Sequence record: MG592671.1
Strand: one strand, 5' to 3'
Length of the DNA: 64,000 bases
How positions within the stretch are numbered: the stretch's first letter is position 1; the number at the start of each line of letters is the position of its first letter. The translations under genes were made by a program, and so were the position numbers. This document shows, piece after piece, positions 2,966 to 58,723 of this stretch. The notes below the pieces were generated by a model. That model saw nothing but the letters and a program-made list of their open reading frames with translations, did not search any database and was not told the origin of the DNA.

Positions 2966-4134
2966 TGATATCAGATAAAGATTTAGACATCAAAGTAAAA
3001 CGTAATTTTTGTAATTATAGTGGTCATTTAGAAGAAGAATATGAGTACTATGATAGTGTTGATGACCATGGCAAGCATGTTGAGGTTAAGCATGGATACT
3101 ACCACATGTACAGCTCAGATTGTCCCACATTTATACAGAATGACTATATCTACAGACATAACAAACTCCACGGCCACCAAAAAGAATATGAATGGGATTT
3201 CGAAAATCGCTTAGAAGCTGAAGGTGAATTTGACAATGGGGTTAAAGTAGGAGTTCATAAAAGCTACAATTACGTTCGACTTAATAATTTCAACGATGAC
3301 AAAGTCTTTGTTGAAATTAGAATGTGTGCATATGTTAATGGCAAGTTGCACGGAGTTTCTCAGGAGCAACTAGAAGATGGTACTGTTATTAGCGAAGCTA
3401 TCTACAATAACGGCGTTTTAGAGTCTATGTGGGAAAAGGACAGTTCCTCTGGTTATAAATTACTTGATAAAGCTTTTTGTAAACTTGGTAATAAAAAATT
3501 AGGAGCATCGTGGGATAGAGGCGAGCTTACTGCTAAGTGGGAAGCTACGATGGGATGCGACGATTTACATAACGAAGTGTACATTACCAAATATGAAGAT
3601 TACGAGACTGGGCCAGGTGGTAAGAATTTTTTAAGAACGTATGTTGAGTTTGATGAGAACAGCAACGCAACAACTGCCAAGACTTTTTACTCTTCTGGGG
3701 CAATCAACGAAGTATACACTGTGGTTAATAATCCATTTAGAAAGTTGCAAACTTCCCCTACAAATGCAATACACTACCATACTTCACCAGAAAACAGCCC
3801 AGGAGCGCCTTGGTTTGGTAACATCCCATATCTACCAGATGAATTTCGTCGTCAAGGCCTACAGCGAGTCGAGTATTACGAAAATGGAAATGTTAAGATG
3901 GCTAACATGATAGATGGTAGAAAGTTTCTAGGAGAATTTCGCTTTTACGATGCACTTGGTAATCTTGTTGAGCATGCATATTATCATCAAGGACAAGATG
4001 TTACTAATGATGTTCTTGAGATCGCAGAATGTGATACACTTGATGACATTAGTGAGGAAGCTGAGGTTTTTCTAACACTCCAATATGGTGCGTTACTCTT
4101 AACTCCTAAGGAGTTATTATGTCCTCTGAAGTAA
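2965..4134 (+). CDS. MORN-variant/YwqK-like repeat protein
   Basis: Repeats such as EGEFDNGVKVG, YVNGKLHG, YYENGNVK. Confidence 0.6.
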   Translation: MISDKDLDIKVKRNFCNYSGHLEEEYEYYDSVDDHGKHVEVKHGYYHMYSSDCPTFIQNDYIYRHNKLHGHQKEYEWDFENRLEAEGEFDNGVKVGVHKSYNYVRLNNFNDDKVFVEIRMCAYVNGKLHGVSQEQLEDGTVISEAIYNNGVLESMWEKDSSSGYKLLDKAFCKLGNKKLGASWDRGELTAKWEATMGCDDLHNEVYITKYEDYETGPGGKNFLRTYVEFDENSNATTAKTFYSSGAINEVYTVVNNPFRKLQTSPTNAIHYHTSPENSPGAPWFGNIPYLPDEFRRQGLQRVEYYENGNVKMANMIDGRKFLGEFRFYDALGNLVEHAYYHQGQDVTNDVLEIAECDTLDDISEEAEVFLTLQYGALLLTPKELLCPLK

Positions 4135-4463
4135 AAGTTAGATTCACAGTACATCCACTTTTCGAGATGTATGAAGAAGATTACAATATTAGACAAGTAT
4201 CGGTGAAGATTGACAGCGATCGTATTGCTGTCATTAATTGCCAAAAAACAAAAGATAAATGGGGCGAGCCTAAATTTGTTATACTAAAAGGACAACTTAC
4301 CTATAGAGAAATGACTGGCTTAGGGTTCGCAATGCAACGCGCCCAAAAGATTATGATGTCTATAGGTCAACTTGTAGTAAGTACAGCTGACTTAGAGCTT
4401 TTAATAGAGAAGGCTGACGGGGAGACTCACGGACCATGCCATGCCCTATCCAACGACGAATAA
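4119..4463 (+). CDS. hypothetical protein
   Basis: ORF coupled to its neighbours. Confidence 0.7.
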   Translation: MSSEVKVRFTVHPLFEMYEEDYNIRQVSVKIDSDRIAVINCQKTKDKWGEPKFVILKGQLTYREMTGLGFAMQRAQKIMMSIGQLVVSTADLELLIEKADGETHGPCHALSNDE

Positions 4464-4723
4464 TGAATATTCTTCAAACACAGCATGAAATATGTGTGGA
4501 AGTAAAACACATTACTAAACGATATACTATGAAACACTCATACCGTAGTGTTGACTCGTTGAATATTCCTAGTGAGTGGATAAAAGTTATATACTTGATC
4601 AGCAGTACTGAGTTGTCAGAATACACTGAAGAGCAAATCATAAACGCAGTAAATCTACTGTCAGAAAAATCAAATGTATCTTTACATGTAGACGGTAAGC
4701 GTCTACGTTATAAGAAGGACTAG
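4463..4723 (+). CDS. hypothetical protein
   Basis: TAATG overlap places the start at 4463. Confidence 0.65.
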   Translation: MNILQTQHEICVEVKHITKRYTMKHSYRSVDSLNIPSEWIKVIYLISSTELSEYTEEQIINAVNLLSEKSNVSLHVDGKRLRYKKD

Positions 4724-6457: not shown

Positions 6458-6793
6458 ATGAGCAATTTTGAAAAGTTTTATCCTGCATTATATAACTGGT
6501 GTTCTCGTCACCCCTCACATATGTTAAGTTCTAATTGTGCATTTAAAAATCTAATGACTAAGGATTTAGGCGATTTGCCTGGATTTGCAGATTGTGGGAT
6601 TAGAACTGTGTACGCTAGAGCAGCCCAAGATCCATTTGCAATCAAATATACCTATCATATAGGAGATGTCAACTCACGTAAGAGTATTAACGTGGTGATA
6701 TCTATGGGAATTGAGTTCCATAGACGTGATGGCAGCACAGCCGCAGCGATTGCAAATGATTTAACATACCAAAATCTTAGGAAGTATACTTAA
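6458..6793 (+). CDS. hypothetical protein
   Basis: ORF coupled to rnlA. Confidence 0.7.
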   Translation: MSNFEKFYPALYNWCSRHPSHMLSSNCAFKNLMTKDLGDLPGFADCGIRTVYARAAQDPFAIKYTYHIGDVNSRKSINVVISMGIEFHRRDGSTAAAIANDLTYQNLRKYT

Positions 6794-7959
6794 TGAAATA
6801 TCAAGAATTATCCACTCGTCAAGAGGAAATCTTTTCTAATCTAACAACTATTTGTAAGGATAGTGACGCATTCTACTTCCAAGATTTCCCAGCAAATGAA
6901 GACGAAGACACAGTGTACCGAATCTTCAATTACCGACAAGCATCATATACTGACTTTTGTATGCCAGATGCGCATGAATGTCGAGGAATTACCTTTGAAG
7001 TATCAATGTATGGTAACCCTATACGTTTAGTATCGATGCCAATGCAGAAATTCTACAATCATTCAGAAACCCCGTTTGCAATGGTACATGATATTTTTGA
7101 TACAGATCCACTACTTCATGTGTCTGAGACTGACGTGAAGGCCGACGGATCTCTGATCAGCTCAGCAATCCACGTAGATGGCATGCTAGTGTTGAAATCC
7201 AAAGGGTCATTTGCCTCAGTCCAAGCAACTGAATCCTTAAAATGGCTCGAGCATCGACCTGAGATATACAACGAGGTGATGCAACTAACCCAAAATGGAT
7301 ATACAGTAAATTTTGAATGGTGTTCACCAGATAATCGTATCATTTTACCATACGCTGAGCCCCATCTTAAAGTGTTAAACATTCGTAATAATTTTACTGG
7401 TGAGTACGAGTCTCGACGTGACATCGGGGTACATTCTCCAGTACTTAAATCTCACATGATTGAACTTGTGTCTCTTCCAGGTAATACTTGGGACGAAATG
7501 ATTGAAACAGTTCGAAAAGAAACTGGTATTGAAGGGTACATTGTCAAGTTTGATAATGGGTTATGGGTTAAAATTAAAACTGACACATACAAAACGTTGC
7601 ATCACTCGAAAGACTCTGTTAATATTCCGCGCCGTTTATTTGAAGCGTGTGTGATGGATGCCACTGATGACCTAAAGGATATGTTTGGGACTGACGAAGT
7701 GGCTATGAAGCTAATTACTGATATGGAAGATTTTGTTCGTCCTATTTATAATGGCATCTGTAATGATGTTGAAACTTTTTATAATGATAACAAAGAGCGC
7801 TCACAGAAAGAATACGCTATTGCTGCACAGGCAGTCTTAGGCAAAGAACTGAACAAGTTTGGCCTAGCTATGTCATTGTACAACGGCAAAGAGATTGACT
7901 ACAAAAGCAATTTGAAGAAGTACTGGAAATCTCTTGGTCTTAAAGATGAGAAAATCTAA
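6793..7959 (+). CDS. rnlA: RNA ligase 1 (T4 RnlA-like)
   Basis: ECRGITF, motif I KADGSLI, EGYIV, VKIK. Confidence 0.9.
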   Translation: MKYQELSTRQEEIFSNLTTICKDSDAFYFQDFPANEDEDTVYRIFNYRQASYTDFCMPDAHECRGITFEVSMYGNPIRLVSMPMQKFYNHSETPFAMVHDIFDTDPLLHVSETDVKADGSLISSAIHVDGMLVLKSKGSFASVQATESLKWLEHRPEIYNEVMQLTQNGYTVNFEWCSPDNRIILPYAEPHLKVLNIRNNFTGEYESRRDIGVHSPVLKSHMIELVSLPGNTWDEMIETVRKETGIEGYIVKFDNGLWVKIKTDTYKTLHHSKDSVNIPRRLFEACVMDATDDLKDMFGTDEVAMKLITDMEDFVRPIYNGICNDVETFYNDNKERSQKEYAIAAQAVLGKELNKFGLAMSLYNGKEIDYKSNLKKYWKSLGLKDEKI

Positions 7960-18818: not shown

Positions 18819-19254
18819 AGAACGAATAGATTTGCTAAATTCTGCATTCATGTCCGAGTGGCTTGATAGCTATTGCTTTGGTGTAGAAGGTGAAGAAGAT
18901 CAGTTTGAGCTCGTTGTTATTGAAGGTTTAAATCAACGCTTTGTTGCTGTGGTGAACTCTGGCACTTTTATTGATCGTCTTTGGGTAGACTCGGATGGTA
19001 CGGTATGGGCAGCAGGAGGTCAAGATGATCCGTTTTTGCCACAACCAGACTGGGATGTTGATAAGGTGAATGGTAAATGGTACTGTGGTGATGAAATTGA
19101 GCAGGTAGGCGAAAATTTCCAATTCAACTACGGGTGTCATTGGTACTCATCTATGTGTATTCCTAAAGTTAAGTCTTACAGCATCACACCAGAAAGTTAT
19201 GCATACTTGACTACTAAATGGTTTTTAGAGTATCCGGATAAACGAGATGAATGA
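18808..19254 (+). CDS. hypothetical protein
   Basis: SD AAGGA, coupled. Confidence 0.7.
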   Translation: MNDKERIDLLNSAFMSEWLDSYCFGVEGEEDQFELVVIEGLNQRFVAVVNSGTFIDRLWVDSDGTVWAAGGQDDPFLPQPDWDVDKVNGKWYCGDEIEQVGENFQFNYGCHWYSSMCIPKVKSYSITPESYAYLTTKWFLEYPDKRDE

Positions 19255-43107: not shown

Positions 43108-43719
43108 TACTGATAGTGCTTGGAGTTAAATCCCAGGCATTACTAGAACTGGTTCTAATCACCAGTAGAGGCTCGAGACTCTAAAACGTTAGCAGCTCCT
43201 CCTACTGTGAGGCTTAAGGTGAAACTGAAAAGTCTCTCAGTAAGATACAGGACGTAGTAAAAGTACGAAGTGTAACAGAATGCGCAGTCTGATCAATAAG
43301 AGAGGTTGCTATAGCTGCGGACTGGTATAACTGGTATATTCTAGTAATAGATATATTAGATCAGTTTAGTGGCAACGTGGGTTCGACTCCCATGTGAGAT
43401 CACACTAAGTATTAGAGGAGATACGTCGCTCCTAGTGTTGACGGCATAACTTACTTGCCAGAGCTGAATAAATGTCATGTAGTACCGCTGTCCGAAAGGA
43501 CAGCACATTAACAGAATTTTATAAATATCATTGTACTTAATTAAAAGAATTTAAAACAAGGAAATTGTCGATGCACGTATCAGTTACTAAATCTAGTTCG
43601 TTTAGTAAGGGAACTAAATGGTTCTCCTGGATACTAGTGCCTGAAAATTGTCGACTGATAGCATAACCTCCTTTTTGTTTTGCGCTATTAAGCCGATGAT
43701 TGTTTCATCGGCTTATTTT
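43108..43719 (+). ncRNA. Large (~610 nt) structured non-coding region with a T-arm, ending in a terminator
   Basis: No ORF in the track; more than 12 helices including 10-bp long-range pairs, a GAAA tetraloop and GGGTTCGACTCCC. Confidence 0.7.
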
Positions 43720-45942: not shown

Positions 45943-46031
45943 AGGGAATGTTCTTGTCAGCGGTCTCCAAAACCGTCGAGAATAAACAGACTTGTGGTGC
46001 TCTAGGGGTTCGATTCCTCCATTCCCTGCCA
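45943..46031 (+). tRNA. Atypical tRNA-Trp(CCA) lacking a normal D-arm
   Basis: Acceptor AGGGAAT/ATTCCCT-G-CCA, loop CTCCAAA, T-loop TTCGATT; only ~10 nt where the D-arm should be. Confidence 0.65.
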
Positions 46032-47223: not shown

Positions 47224-47342
47224 GGGCTCATGGCGAAGCGGGATCGCGATTTAGTTTAGTACCTAGATCTAGGAGTACGCATCCGCAACACTCTTAACCG
47301 GCATGATCGGTGACGTTGGTTCGAATCCAACTGAGTCCACTA
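47224..47342 (+). ncRNA. tRNA-like RNA with G3.U70/A73 and a replaced anticodon arm
   Basis: GGGCTCA/TGAGTCC-A-CTA, D-arm and T-arm present. Confidence 0.65.
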
Positions 47343-47349
47343 TTAACTT

Positions 47350-47568
47350 GTCGAGCTGGAAAACAAAGCCTCTGAAACTGTAAAGCCTCCACAAGGTTAA
47401 CAGATTGTAGAAGATTCGTTATACTAAGAGAATCAGGGGAGATAATGTTTGGTCAGAGTAACAAATAGATATGGAATATTAGAGGAAAAGCTAGTAGACA
47501 GTGGAACTACTTGCAGAACTCTTTTAAGACGTTGAAACTACGGGGTTCGATTCCTCGTCTCGGCACAA
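47350..47568 (+). ncRNA. 219-nt RNA with tRNA-like termini
   Basis: GTCGAG/CTCGGC-A-CAA; T-arm CGGGG-TTCGATT-CCTCG. Confidence 0.55.
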
Positions 47569-47572
47569 AAAA

Positions 47573-47664
47573 GGAATACAATCGAAAAAGGGCTTGTAGT
47601 AGGCACTGAGACCCAGAAGCCCTGAAATACCCATTCAGATCGTCTGTAAGCAGTGCTGTATTCC
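47573..47664 (+). ncRNA. 92-nt pseudoknotted RNA element
   Basis: GGAATACA/TGTATTCC, AGGGCTT/AAGCCCT, GCACTG/CAGTGC. Confidence 0.55.
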
Positions 47665-47674
47665 TATTAACTAT

Positions 47675-47969
47675 GCCCCTGATGTTCAATACTTGAATAA
47701 GGGAATCCCTGTAAGGCTGGAGTCACCCGGAGAGACAGATTACGATACTATATCACTCACTAATACACTGGATCCAGATCGCGTGTTCGTGACTGTGACG
47801 GTAGTATAGTACGTGTCGTAAAGAGATGATTCCTGTGATACGGTATAAGCTGGTGTAGAACTCGCTCGTGAAGGTAGACTGAAAGCGGACCAAGTGTGAC
47901 TACTTGGCAAAATCCAGGAGTATGTTGAGACTATGAGTTGGGTGGTTCGATTCCACGCCAGGGGCAACA
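47675..47969 (+). ncRNA. ~295-nt RNA with tRNA-like termini
   Basis: GCCCCTG/CAGGGGC-A, T-arm GTGG-TTCGATT-CCAC, internal helices. Confidence 0.65.
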
Positions 47970-48032
47970 ATTCAGGATAACGCAAACGCATTATCCTCAT
48001 TAATATGTGTTAATATAATACAACAACATTAT

Positions 48033-48103
48033 CCCCGTTCCCTAACGTGACACTACAGAAATAATAGAGTTGCTGGACGTTCGAATCGTCAAGCGGGGTC
48101 TAA
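48033..48103 (+). pseudogene. Degenerate tRNA-like element
   Basis: CCCCGTT/AGCGGGG and GACG-TTCGAAT-CGTC only. Confidence 0.45.
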
Positions 48104-48131
48104 TCATCCTTAATATCAAAGGTACTTCATA

Positions 48132-52797: not shown

Positions 52798-53817
52798 ATG
52801 AAACATTATACTTATTGGATTATAGATACTGTAAATGCTATGTATTACCACGGTGTTCATAGCGATAATGATCCAGAAAATATCCATCACTACTCTGGGT
52901 CTTCTAAGTCACTGACATCAGCTATTCAACAATACGGAATATCAAATTTTATAAAGAGAGTTGAGCGTTATTTTGATACTAGGGAAGCAGCTAATAAGTG
53001 GGAAGCAACAGTACATAAGCGATTAGATGTAAAAAACCATAATAAATTTTATAACAATAATAATGCATCAGAAGATTTTACTGCCTACAATAAAGTTACA
53101 GTTAGAGATACAAGCGGTAATATATTTTCGGTAGATAAAAATGACAAAAGATATATTAGTGGTGAACTTGTTCATAATAATTTAGGTAAGCACATTGTAA
53201 TTGATTCAAATGGTGATGCGTTTAAAATATTAGCTAGTGATGAAAGATTTGTAAGTGGGGAGCTAAAAGACAGATTATCAGGAAAAGTTATCGTCAAAGA
53301 CGAAAACGATAATAATATTTTAGTAGAAACTACAGATACAAAATATTTAAGAGGTGAATACACCCACATTAATGCTGGTGTGGTAACAGTTAAGGATACA
53401 AACGGAAATACTATGCGGGTTTCAACAGACGATCCTAGATATATTTCAGGAGAGCTTGTTCATCTAACCACAGGGCGTGTGACTGTAAAAGATAAAGCAG
53501 GAAATCACATACAAGTAGACATTGATGATCCAAGAATTGATAATGGCGAGTTTACATATCTACAAGTTGGTAAAGTTCCAGTCAAAGATGAGAATGGTAC
53601 TATATTCCAAGTTGATGCCACTGACCCTAGATATATTTCAGGGGAATTAACACATCATCTTAAGGGGATTTCCAATAGTCACAAAGATAGAATTTGGATA
53701 ACTAATCCTATATTAAAGAAGAACAAGCGCGTTCTTAAAGATGATTTGGATTCTTGGTTACTGAAATCTGATTGGACTAAAGGTCGTAAAACTTACGCAA
53801 AAATAAAGGAATTATAA
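52798..53817 (+). mobile_element. GIY-YIG (Seg-like) homing endonuclease with six ~32-aa repeats
   Basis: HYTYWI...YYHGVH...YSGS; repeats VKD--G----V---DPRY-SGEL; own promoter at 52756. Confidence 0.8.
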
Positions 53818-55067
53818 TGTCTAAAGAAATAAAGAATGTAATAGTACAGCATTATGCTGGTAGCATATCTTATGGCACATCACTTCCTACGAGTGATACT
53901 GATATCCGCGGTATCTTCTGTGCTGGTGAAGAAAATATACGTACGCCGTTCTTTCCTATCCGTGAACAAACACTAGAAGATGAAGAAGATGGTAAGCTAT
54001 ATGAGCTTAGTAATTTCCTTAAGTTATACACTGATGGTAACCCGAATATCCTAGAATCTCTATGGGTAGATGATAGACACATCATTGAAGGTTCAGAAGC
54101 ATACGATATTCTTACTGAACACAGGCAAACTCTGCTGTCTAAAAAGGTTGCATTCACTTATAGCGGCTACGCTATTTCGCAACTACATCGTATCAAAGGC
54201 CACAACAAGTACATCAATAACCCAGCTAAAGAGACGCCACCACGTCAAATTGACTTTGTGAAGCTAGTTCATAACTTTACAGACAAAAAGATCTTTAAGA
54301 TCAATATGGAAGATATCCAAAACGGATACAGGTTAATACCATACGGTGGTGATTTATTTGGTGTTTATGAATCCCCGGGTTCCCAAACATTCGATCACTT
54401 GTTCACATTGAACACTAATTGTGATGCAGATCTAAGTGGCTTCTACACAAAGACTCGAACATTCACAGATAAGATAGCTGGATTCATTACAGGTAATCCT
54501 GATTTTGGAACACGCAAACTCCCACTGTTCATTGTATCGTTTAACCGTGAAGGTTACAAGAAATCAAAAGAGCATTGGAAATCTTACTGGAGCTGGAAGC
54601 GTAATCGTAACGAAGCACGACGTTTGCTTGAAGAAGAAAACGGATACGATACAAAACACGCTCAACATTTGGTAAGACTGCTGAATATGGCTGAAGAAAT
54701 CCTAACTGATGGTATAGTAAAAGTGTTCCGCCCTGATCGAGAATTATTATTAGATATTCGACATGGTAAGTTCTCTTTTGATGAGCTTATGGAAATGGTT
54801 GAAGGTAAGGATGAATACATCCGTGGAGAGTTGTACAAGAAATCTCCGCTACCAAAAGCACCTGATATCAAACTAGCTTCTAAAGTTCTCATAGATGCTC
54901 AAGATTGTTTCTGGAAAGAGCCAACAAAAGAAAAGCGTATTCAGAAAGCCAAAGATCGCATGTTTGATCGTCATCAAAAAGAAGAAGATCGCCGTGAAGC
55001 ACGTTTCTGTGAAAACATGGAACGACTACAAGAAAATCTGAAAGGTGATGATAATGAATCAGAATAG
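53817..55067 (+). CDS. RlaP-like (Nuc-transf) Pol-beta nucleotidyltransferase
   Basis: AGSISYGTSLPTSDTDIRGIF, GNPNILE, YDTKHAQHLVRL. Confidence 0.85.
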   Translation: MSKEIKNVIVQHYAGSISYGTSLPTSDTDIRGIFCAGEENIRTPFFPIREQTLEDEEDGKLYELSNFLKLYTDGNPNILESLWVDDRHIIEGSEAYDILTEHRQTLLSKKVAFTYSGYAISQLHRIKGHNKYINNPAKETPPRQIDFVKLVHNFTDKKIFKINMEDIQNGYRLIPYGGDLFGVYESPGSQTFDHLFTLNTNCDADLSGFYTKTRTFTDKIAGFITGNPDFGTRKLPLFIVSFNREGYKKSKEHWKSYWSWKRNRNEARRLLEEENGYDTKHAQHLVRLLNMAEEILTDGIVKVFRPDRELLLDIRHGKFSFDELMEMVEGKDEYIRGELYKKSPLPKAPDIKLASKVLIDAQDCFWKEPTKEKRIQKAKDRMFDRHQKEEDRREARFCENMERLQENLKGDDNESE

Positions 55068-55431
55068 TAGAGATTCACTTAGGAGTACTCTTAATGAGTA
55101 CTTCAGACTCTGTAATTCCTGTGAACAAGCAGGTATTGACATTGATGATGTCCATAATGACATTACAAAAACAGTCACTCAAGAAGGTGGTCCACAGAAG
55201 CTAGAAGATTTTCTAGTGAATACTGTTTGCTGTCCTAGCTGTGAAGGCGAGGCTGGCGAGAGTGTTGCTGATGGACACGACTGTTGGGGAAAAACAGAGT
55301 TCAGTTTTATCCCTTGTTTCAAATGTGACGGTAAAGGCTTTTTACCAGCTGATTATAAAGAACAAGAGAAGAACGAACGACGTAAAATGTACATACAGCT
55401 TCGTGAAGAATTTGGACACGAAGATATTTAA
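55054..55431 (+). CDS. Protein with a DnaJ-type CxxCxG zinc finger
   Basis: CPSCEG, CFKCDGKG. Confidence 0.7.
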   Translation: MNQNSRDSLRSTLNEYFRLCNSCEQAGIDIDDVHNDITKTVTQEGGPQKLEDFLVNTVCCPSCEGEAGESVADGHDCWGKTEFSFIPCFKCDGKGFLPADYKEQEKNERRKMYIQLREEFGHEDI

Positions 55432-55464
55432 TGTAATAAAGTCATAAAAATATGTTATAACATA
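55432..55464 (+). promoter_or_regulatory. Phage promoter variant, palindromic
   Basis: TGTAATA-N14-TGTTATAAC; TATGTTATAACATA palindrome. Confidence 0.6.
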
Positions 55465-55519
55465 TAGTAAGCAGACAGGCTGCTAACTAAAACTTATAAC
55501 ATATTCAAAAGAGGCTACT

Positions 55520-56077
55520 ATGTCAAAAGCTAAAAAGGCTGCAGAGGCTACTAGTAAAGCAACAAAAGGCGCTGTGAAAGGTGTCGGTAAAGGTTTATTA
55601 GGTGGACTCCAGTCAATCTGGAAATTCGGCGGTAAGTGGTTGTTACTAGCGAACGCATTCTCGTTCTTATGCGTTGCGGGAATTTATAACTGGATTGCAC
55701 CAGAGTATACAGTTGTTGGATACTTCCAAAATGCAATACAAAGTGGCGATCCACTATCGAATATGGTAGGTATGTCAATTGTAACGTTGCTCTTATTTGG
55801 CGCAATTGGCTATATGGCTAATAACACTAAGCGATCTTTAGGTTGGATCGGGTTAATCTTTATGTCAACACTCATCGGTCTTGTTGGTTTTTGGATGTTC
55901 ACACTTGGCACTTTTGATGGCGCGAGTACTGCATTCCTAGCAACTATTGCACAGATAGGTGTTTCTTTTGTGTTAGCTTTCGGCCTAGTGTACGCTAAAA
56001 TCGATAAGATTATAACCGGTCGTGTCAATACTGACTCCTACGATGTGGGCGGTGATGACGATGACGATGATCGATAA
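55520..56077 (+). CDS. Four-TM membrane protein
   Basis: Hydrophobic helices; acidic tail. Confidence 0.75.
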   Translation: MSKAKKAAEATSKATKGAVKGVGKGLLGGLQSIWKFGGKWLLLANAFSFLCVAGIYNWIAPEYTVVGYFQNAIQSGDPLSNMVGMSIVTLLLFGAIGYMANNTKRSLGWIGLIFMSTLIGLVGFWMFTLGTFDGASTAFLATIAQIGVSFVLAFGLVYAKIDKIITGRVNTDSYDVGGDDDDDDR

Positions 56078-56088
56078 TTGATCACTAA

Positions 56089-56111
56089 AGGGGAGGACTT
56101 GTCCTCCCCCT
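56089..56111 (+). terminator. GC-rich hairpin
   Basis: GGGGAGGAC/GTCCTCCCC. Confidence 0.6.
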
Positions 56112-56137
56112 ATTAACTTAATGTACGAGATTTAAAA

Positions 56138-56563
56138 ATGTCAAAATTAATTACTAACCTAAATAGTGATAACTTCGATTTTGAGGATATCCTGTACTTA
56201 AAAACCCGTTTAAAATTCAAGTTCAAAAATGAACCTGAAGTAAATGTAGACCTTAGTTTCTACCCTCATGATCGAGATTATGGATTCACAAAACGTTTCA
56301 AAAATTCATCCAAATGGGAAGAATATATGAGTATTCTTCGTAAAGCTAAAAACATTCTCAAAGAAGGACTAGTTGAAAATCTAGAACTTGAAACATACTC
56401 AACTGGTTATTACGCTGTTGATTCTGAGCATCGAACAATCTCACGTAAAGGAATGAGCGCAGTGATTAATAGCGAATGGAACGAACGTTATCGTATTGAT
56501 ACGCCAATTGAATCTGCGGAAGAAGTAATTTTGTGGACTAAAATGGTTCTTTTAGGCAAATAA
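56138..56563 (+). CDS. hypothetical protein
   Basis: ORF. Confidence 0.7.
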   Translation: MSKLITNLNSDNFDFEDILYLKTRLKFKFKNEPEVNVDLSFYPHDRDYGFTKRFKNSSKWEEYMSILRKAKNILKEGLVENLELETYSTGYYAVDSEHRTISRKGMSAVINSEWNERYRIDTPIESAEEVILWTKMVLLGK

Positions 56564-56571
56564 AGATTTAA

Positions 56572-56665
56572 ACACATGACAACAGAGTTATTTGGTTCAA
56601 ATCCAGGCTTGGCGGGTAAGACTGCATTGAAGCTTATTATTGGTATAAAGCACTACGTTATGTGT
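56572..56665 (+). ncRNA. 94-nt circularly permuted tRNA mimic (YrlA-like topology)
   Basis: Terminal stem ACACATGAC/GTTATGTGT; the T-arm precedes the D-arm. Confidence 0.55.
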
Positions 56666-56694
56666 CATTAACTTATAATATAACGAGCGTTTAA

Positions 56695-57117
56695 ATGTTT
56701 TGGAATGAAAATAAAAAGTGCGATACGTCTACAGATAATAATGTACTGCCAAAATATCGTAATCCAGATAATGAATTATACGGAACGTACGTTGTTGTTA
56801 GACCAAATATGTCAATAGACGATCTCGTTGCAATCCAAGATTGGGTTAAAGAGCATCCTAATTTGACACTAGTAACAATGCCAGTTGCTGACATCCTTGC
56901 TAATGCAAAAAGAAATGGCCAAGCACACGTATGTATTGATACTATTGGTAATGTTTCATCTGACATGAATCCCCATAAAGAGTTTCGCGAACTAACGTTA
57001 CATTTAAAGCCTACTGTATATTGGTATAATGTTGAGCCTGCTGTTATTGAGGTTCTAGGCAAGAAGTATGATAAGACTCAATTAGAAGAAGCTCTTAGAA
57101 ATATCGATTCAAAGTAA
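56695..57117 (+). CDS. hypothetical protein
   Basis: ORF. Confidence 0.7.
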   Translation: MFWNENKKCDTSTDNNVLPKYRNPDNELYGTYVVVRPNMSIDDLVAIQDWVKEHPNLTLVTMPVADILANAKRNGQAHVCIDTIGNVSSDMNPHKEFRELTLHLKPTVYWYNVEPAVIEVLGKKYDKTQLEEALRNIDSK

Positions 57118-57132
57118 CGCCGGAGGCAATGA

Positions 57133-57606
57133 ATGCAAGAGATCGAGCGTAAGTTTTTACCAGCACCTGGTGCAGTAATCCCGTTTACTTCAGATAATGA
57201 AGAAATCATCCAAATGTACATCCATGAAGAAGGCGAAGATACTGTATGTCGTTTACGTCTTATTGATGGCCACAAAGCGTTAATCACTCAGAAAGACAAA
57301 AGTCTAGATGGCGGGTTCTCATGTAATGAGCTTGAATCTCGTATCCCATATCATATAGGGTTAGTGATGTATGATGCGTGTGGTAATCCGCCTATCATCA
57401 AAGAACGTTATCGTATCCCACACGGCGAGTTAACTTTCGAAGTAGATGTATTTTCTGATCACAATAAAGGCTTAGTCCTTATTGAAATCGAAATGCCTTC
57501 TAAAGATACAGTTATCACGTTACCTGACTGGGTAGGCGAAGAAGTAACTTTAGATCCACGTTATAAAAACGTTAATCTAATAAAAAATCCATATGAACTA
57601 TGGTAA
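57133..57606 (+). CDS. CYTH (triphosphate tunnel metalloenzyme) protein
   Basis: QEIERKFL, RLR, K-RY, EVD-F, IEIE, EEVT-DPRYKN. Confidence 0.9.
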   Translation: MQEIERKFLPAPGAVIPFTSDNEEIIQMYIHEEGEDTVCRLRLIDGHKALITQKDKSLDGGFSCNELESRIPYHIGLVMYDACGNPPIIKERYRIPHGELTFEVDVFSDHNKGLVLIEIEMPSKDTVITLPDWVGEEVTLDPRYKNVNLIKNPYELW

Positions 57607-57612
57607 ACTAAT

Positions 57613-57785
57613 TTAAGCAGCAACTCGTGGTAGGGGAATGTAGACCCGCCTTGGGGAATCTAGGAGAGCTCAGAGGATACTTGCGGCACAGTTGAAGAGT
57701 GTTCCCTAATTCACGGGACGTGTAGCCTTAATGGCGAAGTGTAGACTGTTACTGGTTCAAGTCCAGTCCATCGAACGCTGCTTAA
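57613..57785 (+). ncRNA. tRNA-Leu-like RNA, copy 1 (expanded anticodon domain, extended acceptor)
   Basis: TTAAGCAGC/GCTGCTTAA; T-arm ACTGG-TTCAAGT-CCAGT. Confidence 0.6.
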
Positions 57786-57789
57786 TAAA

Positions 57790-57950
57790 ATGAAATACAG
57801 CAACTCGTTGTGGTGAAACTGGTAGACGCGCCTGGTTGGTACCTGCGTTGACTACCCCTGTAAAAAAAGGGGTCATAGACAATGGGACGCCCGGGATCCT
57901 TGTGAAAGGGGAGTGCAGGTTCGAGTCCTGTCTTCGAACGCTGTGTTCAT
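57790..57950 (+). ncRNA. tRNA-Leu-like RNA, copy 2
   Basis: D-arm GTGGTGAAACTGGTAGACGCG, V-arm, T-arm GCAGG-TTCGAGT-CCTGT; shares terminal motifs with copy 1. Confidence 0.65.
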
Positions 57951-57953
57951 ACT

Positions 57954-58063
57954 TGAGAAGATCATAAACAAAATTTGGTACGCGCTTCAGTTGTGAGGTT
58001 CAATTCCTCGAGGTTCTAGGTGACCAACGTCGACGTAGAGGTTCGAATCCTCCTTTTCAACCA
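57954..58063 (+). ncRNA. 110-nt CCA-ending tRNA-like RNA with two T-loops
   Basis: TGAGAAG/CTTTTCA-A-CCA. Confidence 0.6.
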
Positions 58064-58077
58064 AAAAATAATAGGAT

Positions 58078-58500
58078 ATGAGTATGAATCTTAATGAAAT
58101 CGAATTAGTCCCTAAAACTAAAACATTTTATGTTCGTTATACATCCAATCAGACTGGCGTGTATAAAATTGTTGGTACTTCTGAAGAAACATTTAAAAAT
58201 ATTCTTGTTGAACAGCACACAAAAATGCATAGAGCTAAACGATACGTTGATGAGTATCAAACAGAAGTTAACACTGCTCAACGCAAAATGAATAAACTTC
58301 GTGATGATTGTGATTTCACACATTACTACAATCAAGCACAGGATGATCGTAGTAACTATGAATACTACCTGGATCAACAAATGCCAAAATTCAAAAAGGC
58401 AGAAAAAGAATTCAATTTCTATTTTGATCAGATTAATCCAGATGCTGGCGAGTATATTACGCTGATGATGTGTTATGACGCAGAGTGGGTTTTTGAATGA
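58078..58500 (+). CDS. Coiled-coil hypothetical protein
   Basis: SD AGGA. Confidence 0.7.
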   Translation: MSMNLNEIELVPKTKTFYVRYTSNQTGVYKIVGTSEETFKNILVEQHTKMHRAKRYVDEYQTEVNTAQRKMNKLRDDCDFTHYYNQAQDDRSNYEYYLDQQMPKFKKAEKEFNFYFDQINPDAGEYITLMMCYDAEWVFE

Positions 58501-58647: not shown

Positions 58648-58723
58648 GGGCCTTTAGCTCAGTGGTTAGAGCAGTCGACTCATAATCGATTGGTCCGGGG
58701 TTCAAGTCCCTGAAGGCCCACCA
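58648..58723 (+). tRNA. tRNA-Ile2(CAU)
   Basis: 76 nt, loop CTCATAA; body resembles enterobacterial ileX rather than Met tRNAs. Confidence 0.85.

Follow-up and report, generated by a model that had tools for sequence, protein, structure and literature searches.

Two adjacent tRNA-derived elements with identical flanks and predicted closing stalks in Vibrio phage 2.275.O

The locus and its two elements

The window analysed in this study, a stretch of 64,000 nucleotides (nt), comprises bases 124001–188000 of Vibrio phage 2.275.O._10N.286.54.E11 (MG592671.1), a marine, T4-like jumbo phage of 349 kilobases (kb) from the Nahant collection with Vibrio cyclitrophicus as its host. Positions are given in window coordinates unless stated otherwise. 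A gap of 470 nt (57607–58077), without annotation in GenBank MG592671, is flanked by a CYTH-domain gene (57133–57606) and an orphan gene of 140 amino acids (aa) (58078–58500). Two adjacent elements derived from transfer RNA (tRNA), designated el1 and el2, sit in this gap, and the genes and tRNAs neighbouring them are on the + strand throughout. The structural statements on the two elements are based on thermodynamic prediction and two-sequence comparison. The elements and their parts are as follows, with helix lengths in base pairs (bp).

57613–57785, + strand: el1, the whole stalk-closed tRNA-derived element, 173 nt, unannotated in GenBank
57613–57621, + strand: el1 stalk, 5′ strand UUAAGCAGC, partner 57777–57785 (leader–trailer duplex of −13.9 kcal/mol)
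57618–57628, + strand: el1 exact 11-mer CAGCAACTCGT, covering the stalk end, the AAC loop and the start of the acceptor-like strand
57633–57647, + strand: el1 D-arm-like hairpin, GGG / 9-nt loop / CCC, with a shortened D-loop (from sequence and alignment)
57649–57750, + strand: el1 interior, idiosyncratic, replacing the anticodon and variable arms
57711–57720, + strand: el1 UCACGGG-ACG motif, able to pair with 57624–57630
57751–57767, + strand: el1 T-arm, ACUGG UUCAAGU CCAGU (T-arm hairpin scan)
57771–57780, + strand: el1 exact 10-mer TCGAACGCTG
57777–57785, + strand: el1 stalk, 3′ strand GCUGCUUAA
57790–57950, + strand: el2, the whole stalk-closed tRNA-derived element, 161 nt
57790–57801, + strand: el2 stalk, 5′ strand, 11 bp plus bulged A 57795, partner 57940–57950 (−12.8 kcal/mol)
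57798–57808, + strand: el2 exact 11-mer CAGCAACTCGT
57813–57829, + strand: el2 D-arm, GUG / AAACUGGUAGA / CGC (match to the phage tRNA-Leu(UAA))
57831–57895, + strand: el2 anticodon-like stem, 57831–57835 with 57891–57895, around the 55-nt insert 57836–57890
57880–57889, + strand: el2 CAAUGGG-ACG motif within the insert
57896–57914, + strand: el2 class-II-type variable hairpin, CCUU GUGA AAGG
57915–57931, + strand: el2 T-arm, GCAGG UUCGAGU CCUGU (T-arm hairpin scan)
57934–57943, + strand: el2 exact 10-mer TCGAACGCTG

The 11-mer was found exactly at 57618 and 57798 and the 10-mer exactly at 57771 and 57934, with no other copy of either in the window, and the 10-base cores of both flanks had no further copy in the 349-kb genome. 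When the 5′ parts of the elements were aligned up to the end of the D-arm, 29 of the 36 columns were identical, a result that no shuffle out of 300 equalled. MAFFT misaligned these 5′ parts. In a manual comparison the flanks were identical at 21 of 21 positions and the homologous arms at about 71% (D-arm 11/17, T-arm 13/17), and the differences in the D-stem and T-stem preserved pairing. The interiors of el1 and el2 were unrelated (p about 0.96). By their sequences, el1 and el2 are paralogues in tandem, apparently derived from a class-II (leucine-type) tRNA gene. Since the flanks are fully identical beside arms at about 71%, the conservation is non-uniform, unlike uniform drift after duplication.

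The stalk is formed by 9 bp in el1 and by 11 bp with one bulged A in el2. The same 16-nt flanks of the 19 canonical tRNAs of this phage gave duplex energies of +0.8 to −8.1 kcal/mol. Beyond CAGC/GCUG, which both share, the two stalks are built from different pairs, and complementarity is retained in each. The stalk therefore appears to be a specific and maintained feature, because its outer pairs differ yet still pair and its energies lie beyond those of the canonical tRNAs.

The initial annotation of this locus, made from the sequence alone, had described two adjacent elements of 173 and 161 nt with identical flanks, and both the lengths and the exact flanks were confirmed. Its description of a shared scaffold around variable inserts also held, given the exact flanks and the homologous D-arm region and T-arm, as did the unrelatedness of the inserts. 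The structure CAGC-AAC-UCG/CGA-AC-GCUG was borne out in part: both strands of the closing helix have changed in such a way that it is preserved, and it is longer than drawn (9 and 11 bp), and the UCG/CGA pairing does not persist in el2, which has two U-U mismatches there. The inserts had been put at roughly 50–70 nt, which agrees with the 55 nt of el2 but not with el1, where about 100 nt separate the D-arm from the T-arm.

The T-arms described previously were recovered as canonical hairpins at 57751–57767 and 57915–57931, and the Leu-type D-arm was confirmed for one element only. In el2 both a class-II D-arm (3-bp stem, 11-nt loop, G18 G19) and a T-arm are present, and 12 nt there, running through most of the D-loop and one base into the 3′ D-stem strand, match the phage tRNA-Leu(UAA) at every position (12/12). 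In el1 the T-arm is present, and the D-loop has 9 nt with a single G at the G18–G19 position. Furthermore, the el2 T-arm matched that of the phage tRNA-Ser(GGA) at 16 of 17 positions, and a 13-nt core of the el1 T-arm, made up of the 7-nt loop with the three adjoining stem bases on either side, was identical to tRNA-Ser(ACU). Three other candidates were rejected. The complementarity of el2 variable-hairpin bases 57907–57921 to the tRNA-Glu(UUC) anticodon stem-loop 61349–61363 (14/15) was at chance level (E ~3), and neither AUCUAGGAG as a motif common to el1 and the 47224 element nor an internal D-arm duplication within el1 was significant.

Decoding features and folding

The decoding capacity of the elements was assessed with ARAGORN and Rfam, the latter at gathering thresholds on the whole window and permissively (E up to 10) on 57400–58200 and on el1 alone. 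ARAGORN called neither el1 nor el2. In all Rfam scans the sole result for the elements was a sub-threshold match of el2 to the tRNA model RF00005 (18.5 bits, E = 0.6; threshold 29 bits), and el1 did not match this model even when searched by itself. Neither element has a 7-nt anticodon loop: 55 nt stand in its place in el2, and in el1 the D-arm and the T-arm are about 100 nt apart. No encoded CCA follows either element, as the initial annotation had noted, and 13 of the 19 canonical tRNAs of the phage encode CCA. In addition, the tRNA-like acceptor (57624–57630 with 57768–57775) carries a C1-A72 mismatch in both copies, and el2 forms 4 of 7 pairs with two U-U mismatches, while el1 forms 6 of 7 with a bulged U. 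Because the anticodon loop and an encoded CCA are missing, the acceptor is imperfect, ARAGORN makes no call and Rfam gives 18.5 bits or nothing, el1 and el2 are not decoding tRNAs and almost certainly not intron-containing tRNAs. A reading as transfer-messenger RNA (tmRNA) was rejected as well, as neither ARAGORN nor Rfam made a tmRNA call.

Splicing of the inserts to ordinary tRNA-Leu had been named in the initial annotation as one outcome that would overturn its proposal, and in the sequence tests neither element behaved as an ordinary or intron-containing tRNA-Leu gene. That the two are tRNA-Leu genes from which splicing removes the inserts, yielding functional tRNAs, is, in our judgement, scarcely credible. 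The el2 insert does lie exactly at the anticodon-loop position, within a 5-bp anticodon-like stem and followed by a class-II variable hairpin, and RNA ligases as well as a CCA-adding enzyme are encoded by the phage. On the other hand, no intron or ribozyme family matched in Rfam at E up to 10, no bulge-helix-bulge (3 nt / 4 bp / 3 nt) occurred in the predicted constrained or free folds of el1 and el2, and the genome annotation lists no splicing endonuclease. The acceptors are mismatched, the borders of the inserts show no evident Leu anticodon context, and the phage already has a canonical tRNA-Leu(UAA), located downstream of the elements. The tRNA-Leu group I introns of cyanobacteria and plastids lie in the anticodon loop, exceed 200 nt, have a conserved core and splice to a normal tRNA. 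Like those genes, the present elements are of leucine type and are interrupted at the anticodon loop; unlike them, they show neither the size, nor the core, nor the splicing. A group I intron was thus rejected, the inserts of 55 to about 100 nt being too short and matching no group I core.

The pairing around the conserved flanks was also compared between two models. In the alternative to the tRNA-like acceptor, the 5′ CUCGUNG strand pairs with a motif in the interior, with 7 of 7 pairs in both copies. The partners are 57624–57630 and UCACGGG at 57711–57717 in el1, and 57804–57810 and CAAUGGG at 57880–57886 in el2, and ACG comes next after the motif in either case. Between el1 and el2, one pair of this helix has changed in a compensatory way (G-C to U-A) and two in a wobble-preserving way, and the minimum-energy folds of both elements use it. 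A 7-bp partner was also present in about a quarter of the shuffled interiors. Covariation and folds together lend the alternative helix moderate support. The extended-acceptor internal loop of the initial annotation is accordingly best presented as one candidate structure, and the covariation favours the alternative helix. The exactly conserved flank bases are the same under either pairing model. Two further approaches were set aside: a scan with RNAduplex over long windows, made to detect stalks at each of the T-arms, was over-fitted and was discarded, and by-eye comparison of the conserved loop with an integron attC site, a bulge-helix-bulge and a K-turn gave no fit.

Orphan tRNA-like elements, neighbouring genes and relatives

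The whole genome (MG592671) was scanned for T-arm hairpins, defined as a 5-bp stem around TTCRANY. The scan returned 34 hairpins on the + strand and 1 on the − strand, of which 32 lie at record positions 167–211 kb, and about half are outside called tRNAs. The result indicated that el1 and el2 are two among roughly 15–18 remodelled tRNA-derived elements, all on one strand, that annotation tools have overlooked. Of the tRNA-derived genes of this phage, standard tRNA finders thus overlook about half. Three further elements in the window are the following.

57954–58063, + strand: t3, a third tRNA-like element right after el2, unannotated, with a perfect 7-bp acceptor (UGAGAAG/CUUUUCA), A73 and encoded CCA
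45943–46031: unannotated 89-nt tRNA-Trp-like gene, missed by both ARAGORN and Rfam
47224–47339: 116-nt tRNA-like gene, annotated in GenBank as 'tRNA-OTHER, anticodon TTA' and missed by ARAGORN, with an Rfam tRNA score of 37.8 bits

The body of t3 contains two T-arm-like hairpins (57994 and 58037) and no recognisable anticodon arm. The tRNA-Trp-like gene has A1-U72, G2-C71, G3-C70, G73, an encoded CCA and a CUCCAAA anticodon loop on a 5-bp stem; it has no normal D-arm and carries 27 extra nt before the T-arm. In the 116-nt gene the acceptor, D-arm, variable hairpin and T-arm are good, and 62 nt replace the anticodon arm.

Other T-arm hairpins are less readily assigned. A non-coding gap of 800 nt (47349–48105) holds three orphan hairpins (47541, 47941 and 48075), with possible acceptor pairings over 217 nt (47349–47565) and over 66–247 nt (ending near 48102). 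Isolated hairpins at 43377, 49367 and 56591 lie in short gaps between protein genes, away from called tRNAs, and those at 18851 and 23097 (L004 coordinates, outside the window) are likewise in short gaps between protein genes. The tRNA region outside the window contains tRNA-like genes of about 110–145 nt with acceptors of 6–8 bp, 'anticodon' loops of 6 or 8 nt and very long variable regions. Its odd elements are found at L004 3600–4860, 18767–18877, 22989–23122 and 23224–23365. Among them, ~4217–4327 and ~4333–4433 are degenerate tRNA-like elements with stalks of 11 and 8 bp, ~4446–4494 is an acceptor-plus-T-arm mini-helix, and 3600–3925 is an RNA-like stretch of roughly 300 nt with a T-arm at its end.

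The arrangement on one strand bears on a purely cis-acting reading, in which the folds and stalks punctuate a polycistronic transcript, being cut to set the ends of mRNAs and tRNAs, and the excised pieces have no role. It would be in agreement with the position of the elements, which have a coding gene on one side and more tRNA-like and tRNA genes on the other, with the failure to find a promoter or terminator of their own, and with the orphan T-arm hairpins in short inter-gene gaps (49367 and 56591; L004 18851 and 23097). However, two consecutive large elements with long copy-specific interiors exceed the needs of a cleavage signal, and leader–trailer pairing is expected, from general knowledge of pre-tRNAs, to hinder rather than help RNase P. 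We consider this reading distinctly unlikely.

As for the neighbouring genes, an RlaP nucleotidyltransferase (53817–55067) is encoded on the same strand, 2.5 kb upstream of the elements, and the CYTH gene lies directly upstream. The genome also encodes two RNA ligases, a CCA-adding enzyme and a peptidyl-tRNA hydrolase (Pth2). On the tRNA strand, 52798–57606 and 6793–7959 carry a run of genes of RNA-end-repair type, including RlaP, CYTH and an RNA ligase; the GIY-YIG annotation of one protein in this run was not confirmed by Pfam. The second RNA ligase, the CCA-adding enzyme and Pth2 are found elsewhere in the phage genome, together with IF-3, S21, a ClpS-like adaptor and several Clp protease genes. 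TROVE/Ro60, Band-7/SPFH and RtcB were absent from the annotation of the whole genome and were not detected by Pfam in the 13 neighbouring open reading frames (ORFs).

Relatives of the elements were sought by several routes. A blastn search in 'distant' mode against 50,697 phage records returned the phage itself only. Among viral contigs, the two-flank pattern gave one chance match in a high-GC coding sequence, the pattern of T-loop and 3′ flank gave none, and the pattern of 5′ flank and D-loop gave 69 matches, none with a downstream T-arm. The T-loop and 3′-flank pattern also gave 26 matches in metagenomes, all of them chance matches in coding sequence, and the combined pattern gave none in genome contigs. 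Synteny anchored on the CYTH protein led to relatives of at most 44% identity in unrelated contexts, and the downstream protein, used as the other anchor, had no homologue at all. An exact-protein look-up identified three Logan assemblies with the locus, each 100% identical to the window, so they represent the same phage and offer no variation to exploit. The proposal of a new small-RNA family is therefore unsupported at present beyond this genome: two paralogues in one genome were found, with no relative from pattern scans, blastn or synteny.

Some contigs deserve mention in their own right. The contig from Logan SRR8667483 (L112, same phage) ends at window position 58719, one base before the discriminator 58720 and four bases before the encoded-CCA end of a tRNA-Met (58648–58723). 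A 955-nt contig from another sequencing run ends inside el1 (57678). In addition, an unrelated IMG/VR contig of 179 kb, 3300035181_001013 (L007 5800–6760), also has a CYTH homologue in a tRNA region. There the CYTH gene is followed by an ORF-like stretch of ~250 nt, by a tRNA with anticodon CUA ~370 nt downstream (6633–6706), and by an orphan T-arm hairpin (6724) 44 nt past the T-arm of that tRNA, an order that echoes the CYTH / tRNA-like order of the window.

Interpretation and comparison with known systems

The reading we favour, tentatively and at somewhat less than an even chance, is that el1 and el2 are processed, stable, non-decoding tRNA-derived RNAs like RNAC and RNAD of phage T4, with the stalk as a processing or recognition handle. 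They would be transcribed on the + strand within a long rightward transcript spanning the CYTH gene and the tRNA genes. The leader and the trailer would pair into a stalk of 9–11 bp that protects the ends, and the conserved module beside it (5′ CAGC-AAC-UCGU, 3′ UCGA-AC-GCUG) may be a handle for excision, for binding or for both. The cutter or binder could be a double-strand- or structure-specific endonuclease, for example the host RNase III, or a phage factor. In the predicted structure, the stalk and the coaxial inner helices make about two helical turns around a central asymmetric loop, which we take to resemble an RNase III substrate after the model of the T7 processing sites, and an RNase III step at the stalk may be envisaged. 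Furthermore, the retained T-arm, joined in el2 by the tRNA-Leu D-loop, may present a tRNA elbow to tRNA-binding proteins, with the anticodon domain swapped for copy-specific sequence. The freed RNAs of ~150–170 nt might then act in trans as tRNA mimics, either as a decoy or as a cofactor in the conflict between phage and host over tRNA. The AAC/AC loop, the stalk and the GGGACG motif are concrete targets for mutation, and the phage–host pair is culturable.

Several results weigh against this interpretation. The tRNA-like fold of el2 lies 7.5 kcal/mol above the minimum free energy; for el1, the cost of imposing such a fold is 0.3 kcal/mol. The folding of the whole elements was ordinary compared with shuffles (z = −0.46 for el1 and −2.06 for el2). 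The inserts, previously proposed as variable domains, give little evidence of folding: the el1 insert was less stable than its shuffles (z = +1.14), and the el2 insert arm reached z = −1.82. The D-loop of el1 is degenerate. Moreover, no sigma-70-like promoter adjoins el1 or el2 and no terminator-like site was found; the sole sigma-70-like match (57003–57030) is ~600 nt upstream, within the 140-aa gene 56695–57117. Finally, no relative was present in the collections searched, which confines the evidence of conservation to the two paralogues.

Some of these points are shared by the view that the elements are decaying, functionless relics of duplicated tRNA-Leu genes, whose flank identity stems from recent duplication or patchy gene conversion. 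The imperfect acceptor (C1-A72 in each copy, with two U-U in el2 and a bulge in el1), the el1 D-loop one G short, an el1 insert no more structured than shuffles, the failure of Rfam and ARAGORN and the lack of relatives elsewhere would all be expected of relics, and the T-arm matches to tRNA-Ser(GGA) and tRNA-Ser(ACU) are compatible with mosaic exchange. However, identity of 21/21 in the flanks against ~71% in the arms is unexpected under uniform neutral drift, the outer stalk pairs are complementary despite their differing sequence, and the T- and D-stems still pair. In addition, a compact phage genome retains 470 nt here and about 15–18 orphans on one strand. Such decay is regarded as unlikely, though it deserves real weight.

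A broader proposal is that el1 and el2, and perhaps many of the other orphans, are natural tRNA-scaffolded RNAs, combining a conserved stalk-loop handle, recognised by a factor dedicated to processing or binding, with an elbow that recruits tRNA-binding proteins and with interchangeable, target-specific inserts. We hold this to be improbable. In the 'tRNA scaffold' of Ponchon and Dardel, a foreign RNA reportedly takes the place of the anticodon arm, and the tRNA body is said to give folding, processing and stability. Its architecture is the one proposed in the initial annotation; it is artificial, with a perfect acceptor and normal processing by RNase P and at CCA, unlike el1 and el2 with their mismatched acceptor and closing stalk. 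The tRNA clusters of phages are now viewed as weapons against host defences that cleave tRNA. If the proposal were true, scaffolded RNAs could inhibit or decoy host tRNA-cleaving defence nucleases, or serve RlaP and ligase repair as cofactors.

The Y RNAs invite a different comparison. Like Yrn1 of D. radiodurans and YrlA, el1 and el2 join a tRNA-like module to a helix made of the 5′ and 3′ ends. Closure of Yrn1 is on its acceptor side, and the D-to-T order lies inside (PMC4201824); the topology of el1 and el2 is the same. YrlA has no free CCA end, and el1 and el2 encode no CCA. Y RNAs and YrlA occur in a setting of RNA repair and decay (PMC4201824; bioRxiv 10.1101/312249). In contrast, Y RNAs are defined by binding to Ro60/Rsr encoded nearby, of which none is annotated in this phage, and the order in YrlA is permuted (T, acceptor loop, D). 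The motif GNCGAAN0-1G is located near the 5′ end of Y RNAs, whereas el1 and el2 have only (A/U)UCGAACG, at the 3′ end. No Rfam Y_RNA or YrlA model matched el1 or el2 at E up to 10. Another candidate is b7a-tRNA, a tRNA-like non-coding RNA that is predicted beside RNA-repair enzymes including RlaP-type systems, and that is described as very similar to authentic tRNA and as linked to a Band-7 protein and RtcB (bioRxiv 10.1101/312249). The present phage has no annotated Band-7 or RtcB, and the cloverleaf of el1 and el2 is heavily remodelled.

Accordingly, a role as Y-RNA-like or b7a-tRNA-like cofactors of the repair module (RlaP, CYTH and the RNA ligases), tethering these enzymes to damaged tRNA, was considered. 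The position of RlaP (2.5 kb upstream) and CYTH (immediately upstream) on the strand of the elements, the Yrn1-like topology (PMC4201824) and a 3′ flank UCGAACG that resembles GNCGAAN0-1G except for its first G speak for it, as does the prediction of tRNA-like RNAs beside RNA ligases (bioRxiv 10.1101/312249, citing Burroughs and Aravind 2016). Each testable defining feature fails, however: TROVE/Ro60, Band-7/SPFH and RtcB are absent from the annotation, the Y_RNA and YrlA models of Rfam do not match, and the motif is at the wrong end. This role is judged quite improbable.

The closest known systems are thus the stable RNAs of T4, to which the favoured reading as processed, non-decoding RNAs appeals. 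We know of no role found for RNAC and RNAD in about fifty years. Like these RNAs (119–139 nt), el1 and el2 are non-decoding and are encoded among the tRNAs of a phage, on the same strand as the cluster. RNAC (species 1 RNA) and RNAD are small and stable, and they still await a function (PMC3014915, PMC9697503). A canonical T-arm has been retained in RNAC beside an imperfect acceptor-like helix with tandem U-U, as el2 does, and long hairpins replace its D and anticodon arms. No sequence similarity between the T4 RNAs and el1 or el2 was detectable, and the resemblance is a likeness of kind and not homology, because no family model exists. RNAC also folds far better than its shuffles (z = −4.57), unlike el1 and el2, and el2 retains a tRNA-Leu D-loop, unlike the T4 RNAs. 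The annotated mature T4 RNAs lack an extra leader–trailer stalk and a conserved stalk-loop module. Compared with the known stable RNAs of phage tRNA clusters, the distinctive traits of el1 and el2 are a stalk with a strictly conserved loop module and their being paralogues with unrelated interiors. Together with a dozen or more unannotated tRNA-like elements, some with a perfect acceptor and CCA, paralogues with so sharply conserved a module bear on the old question of RNAC and RNAD in T4.

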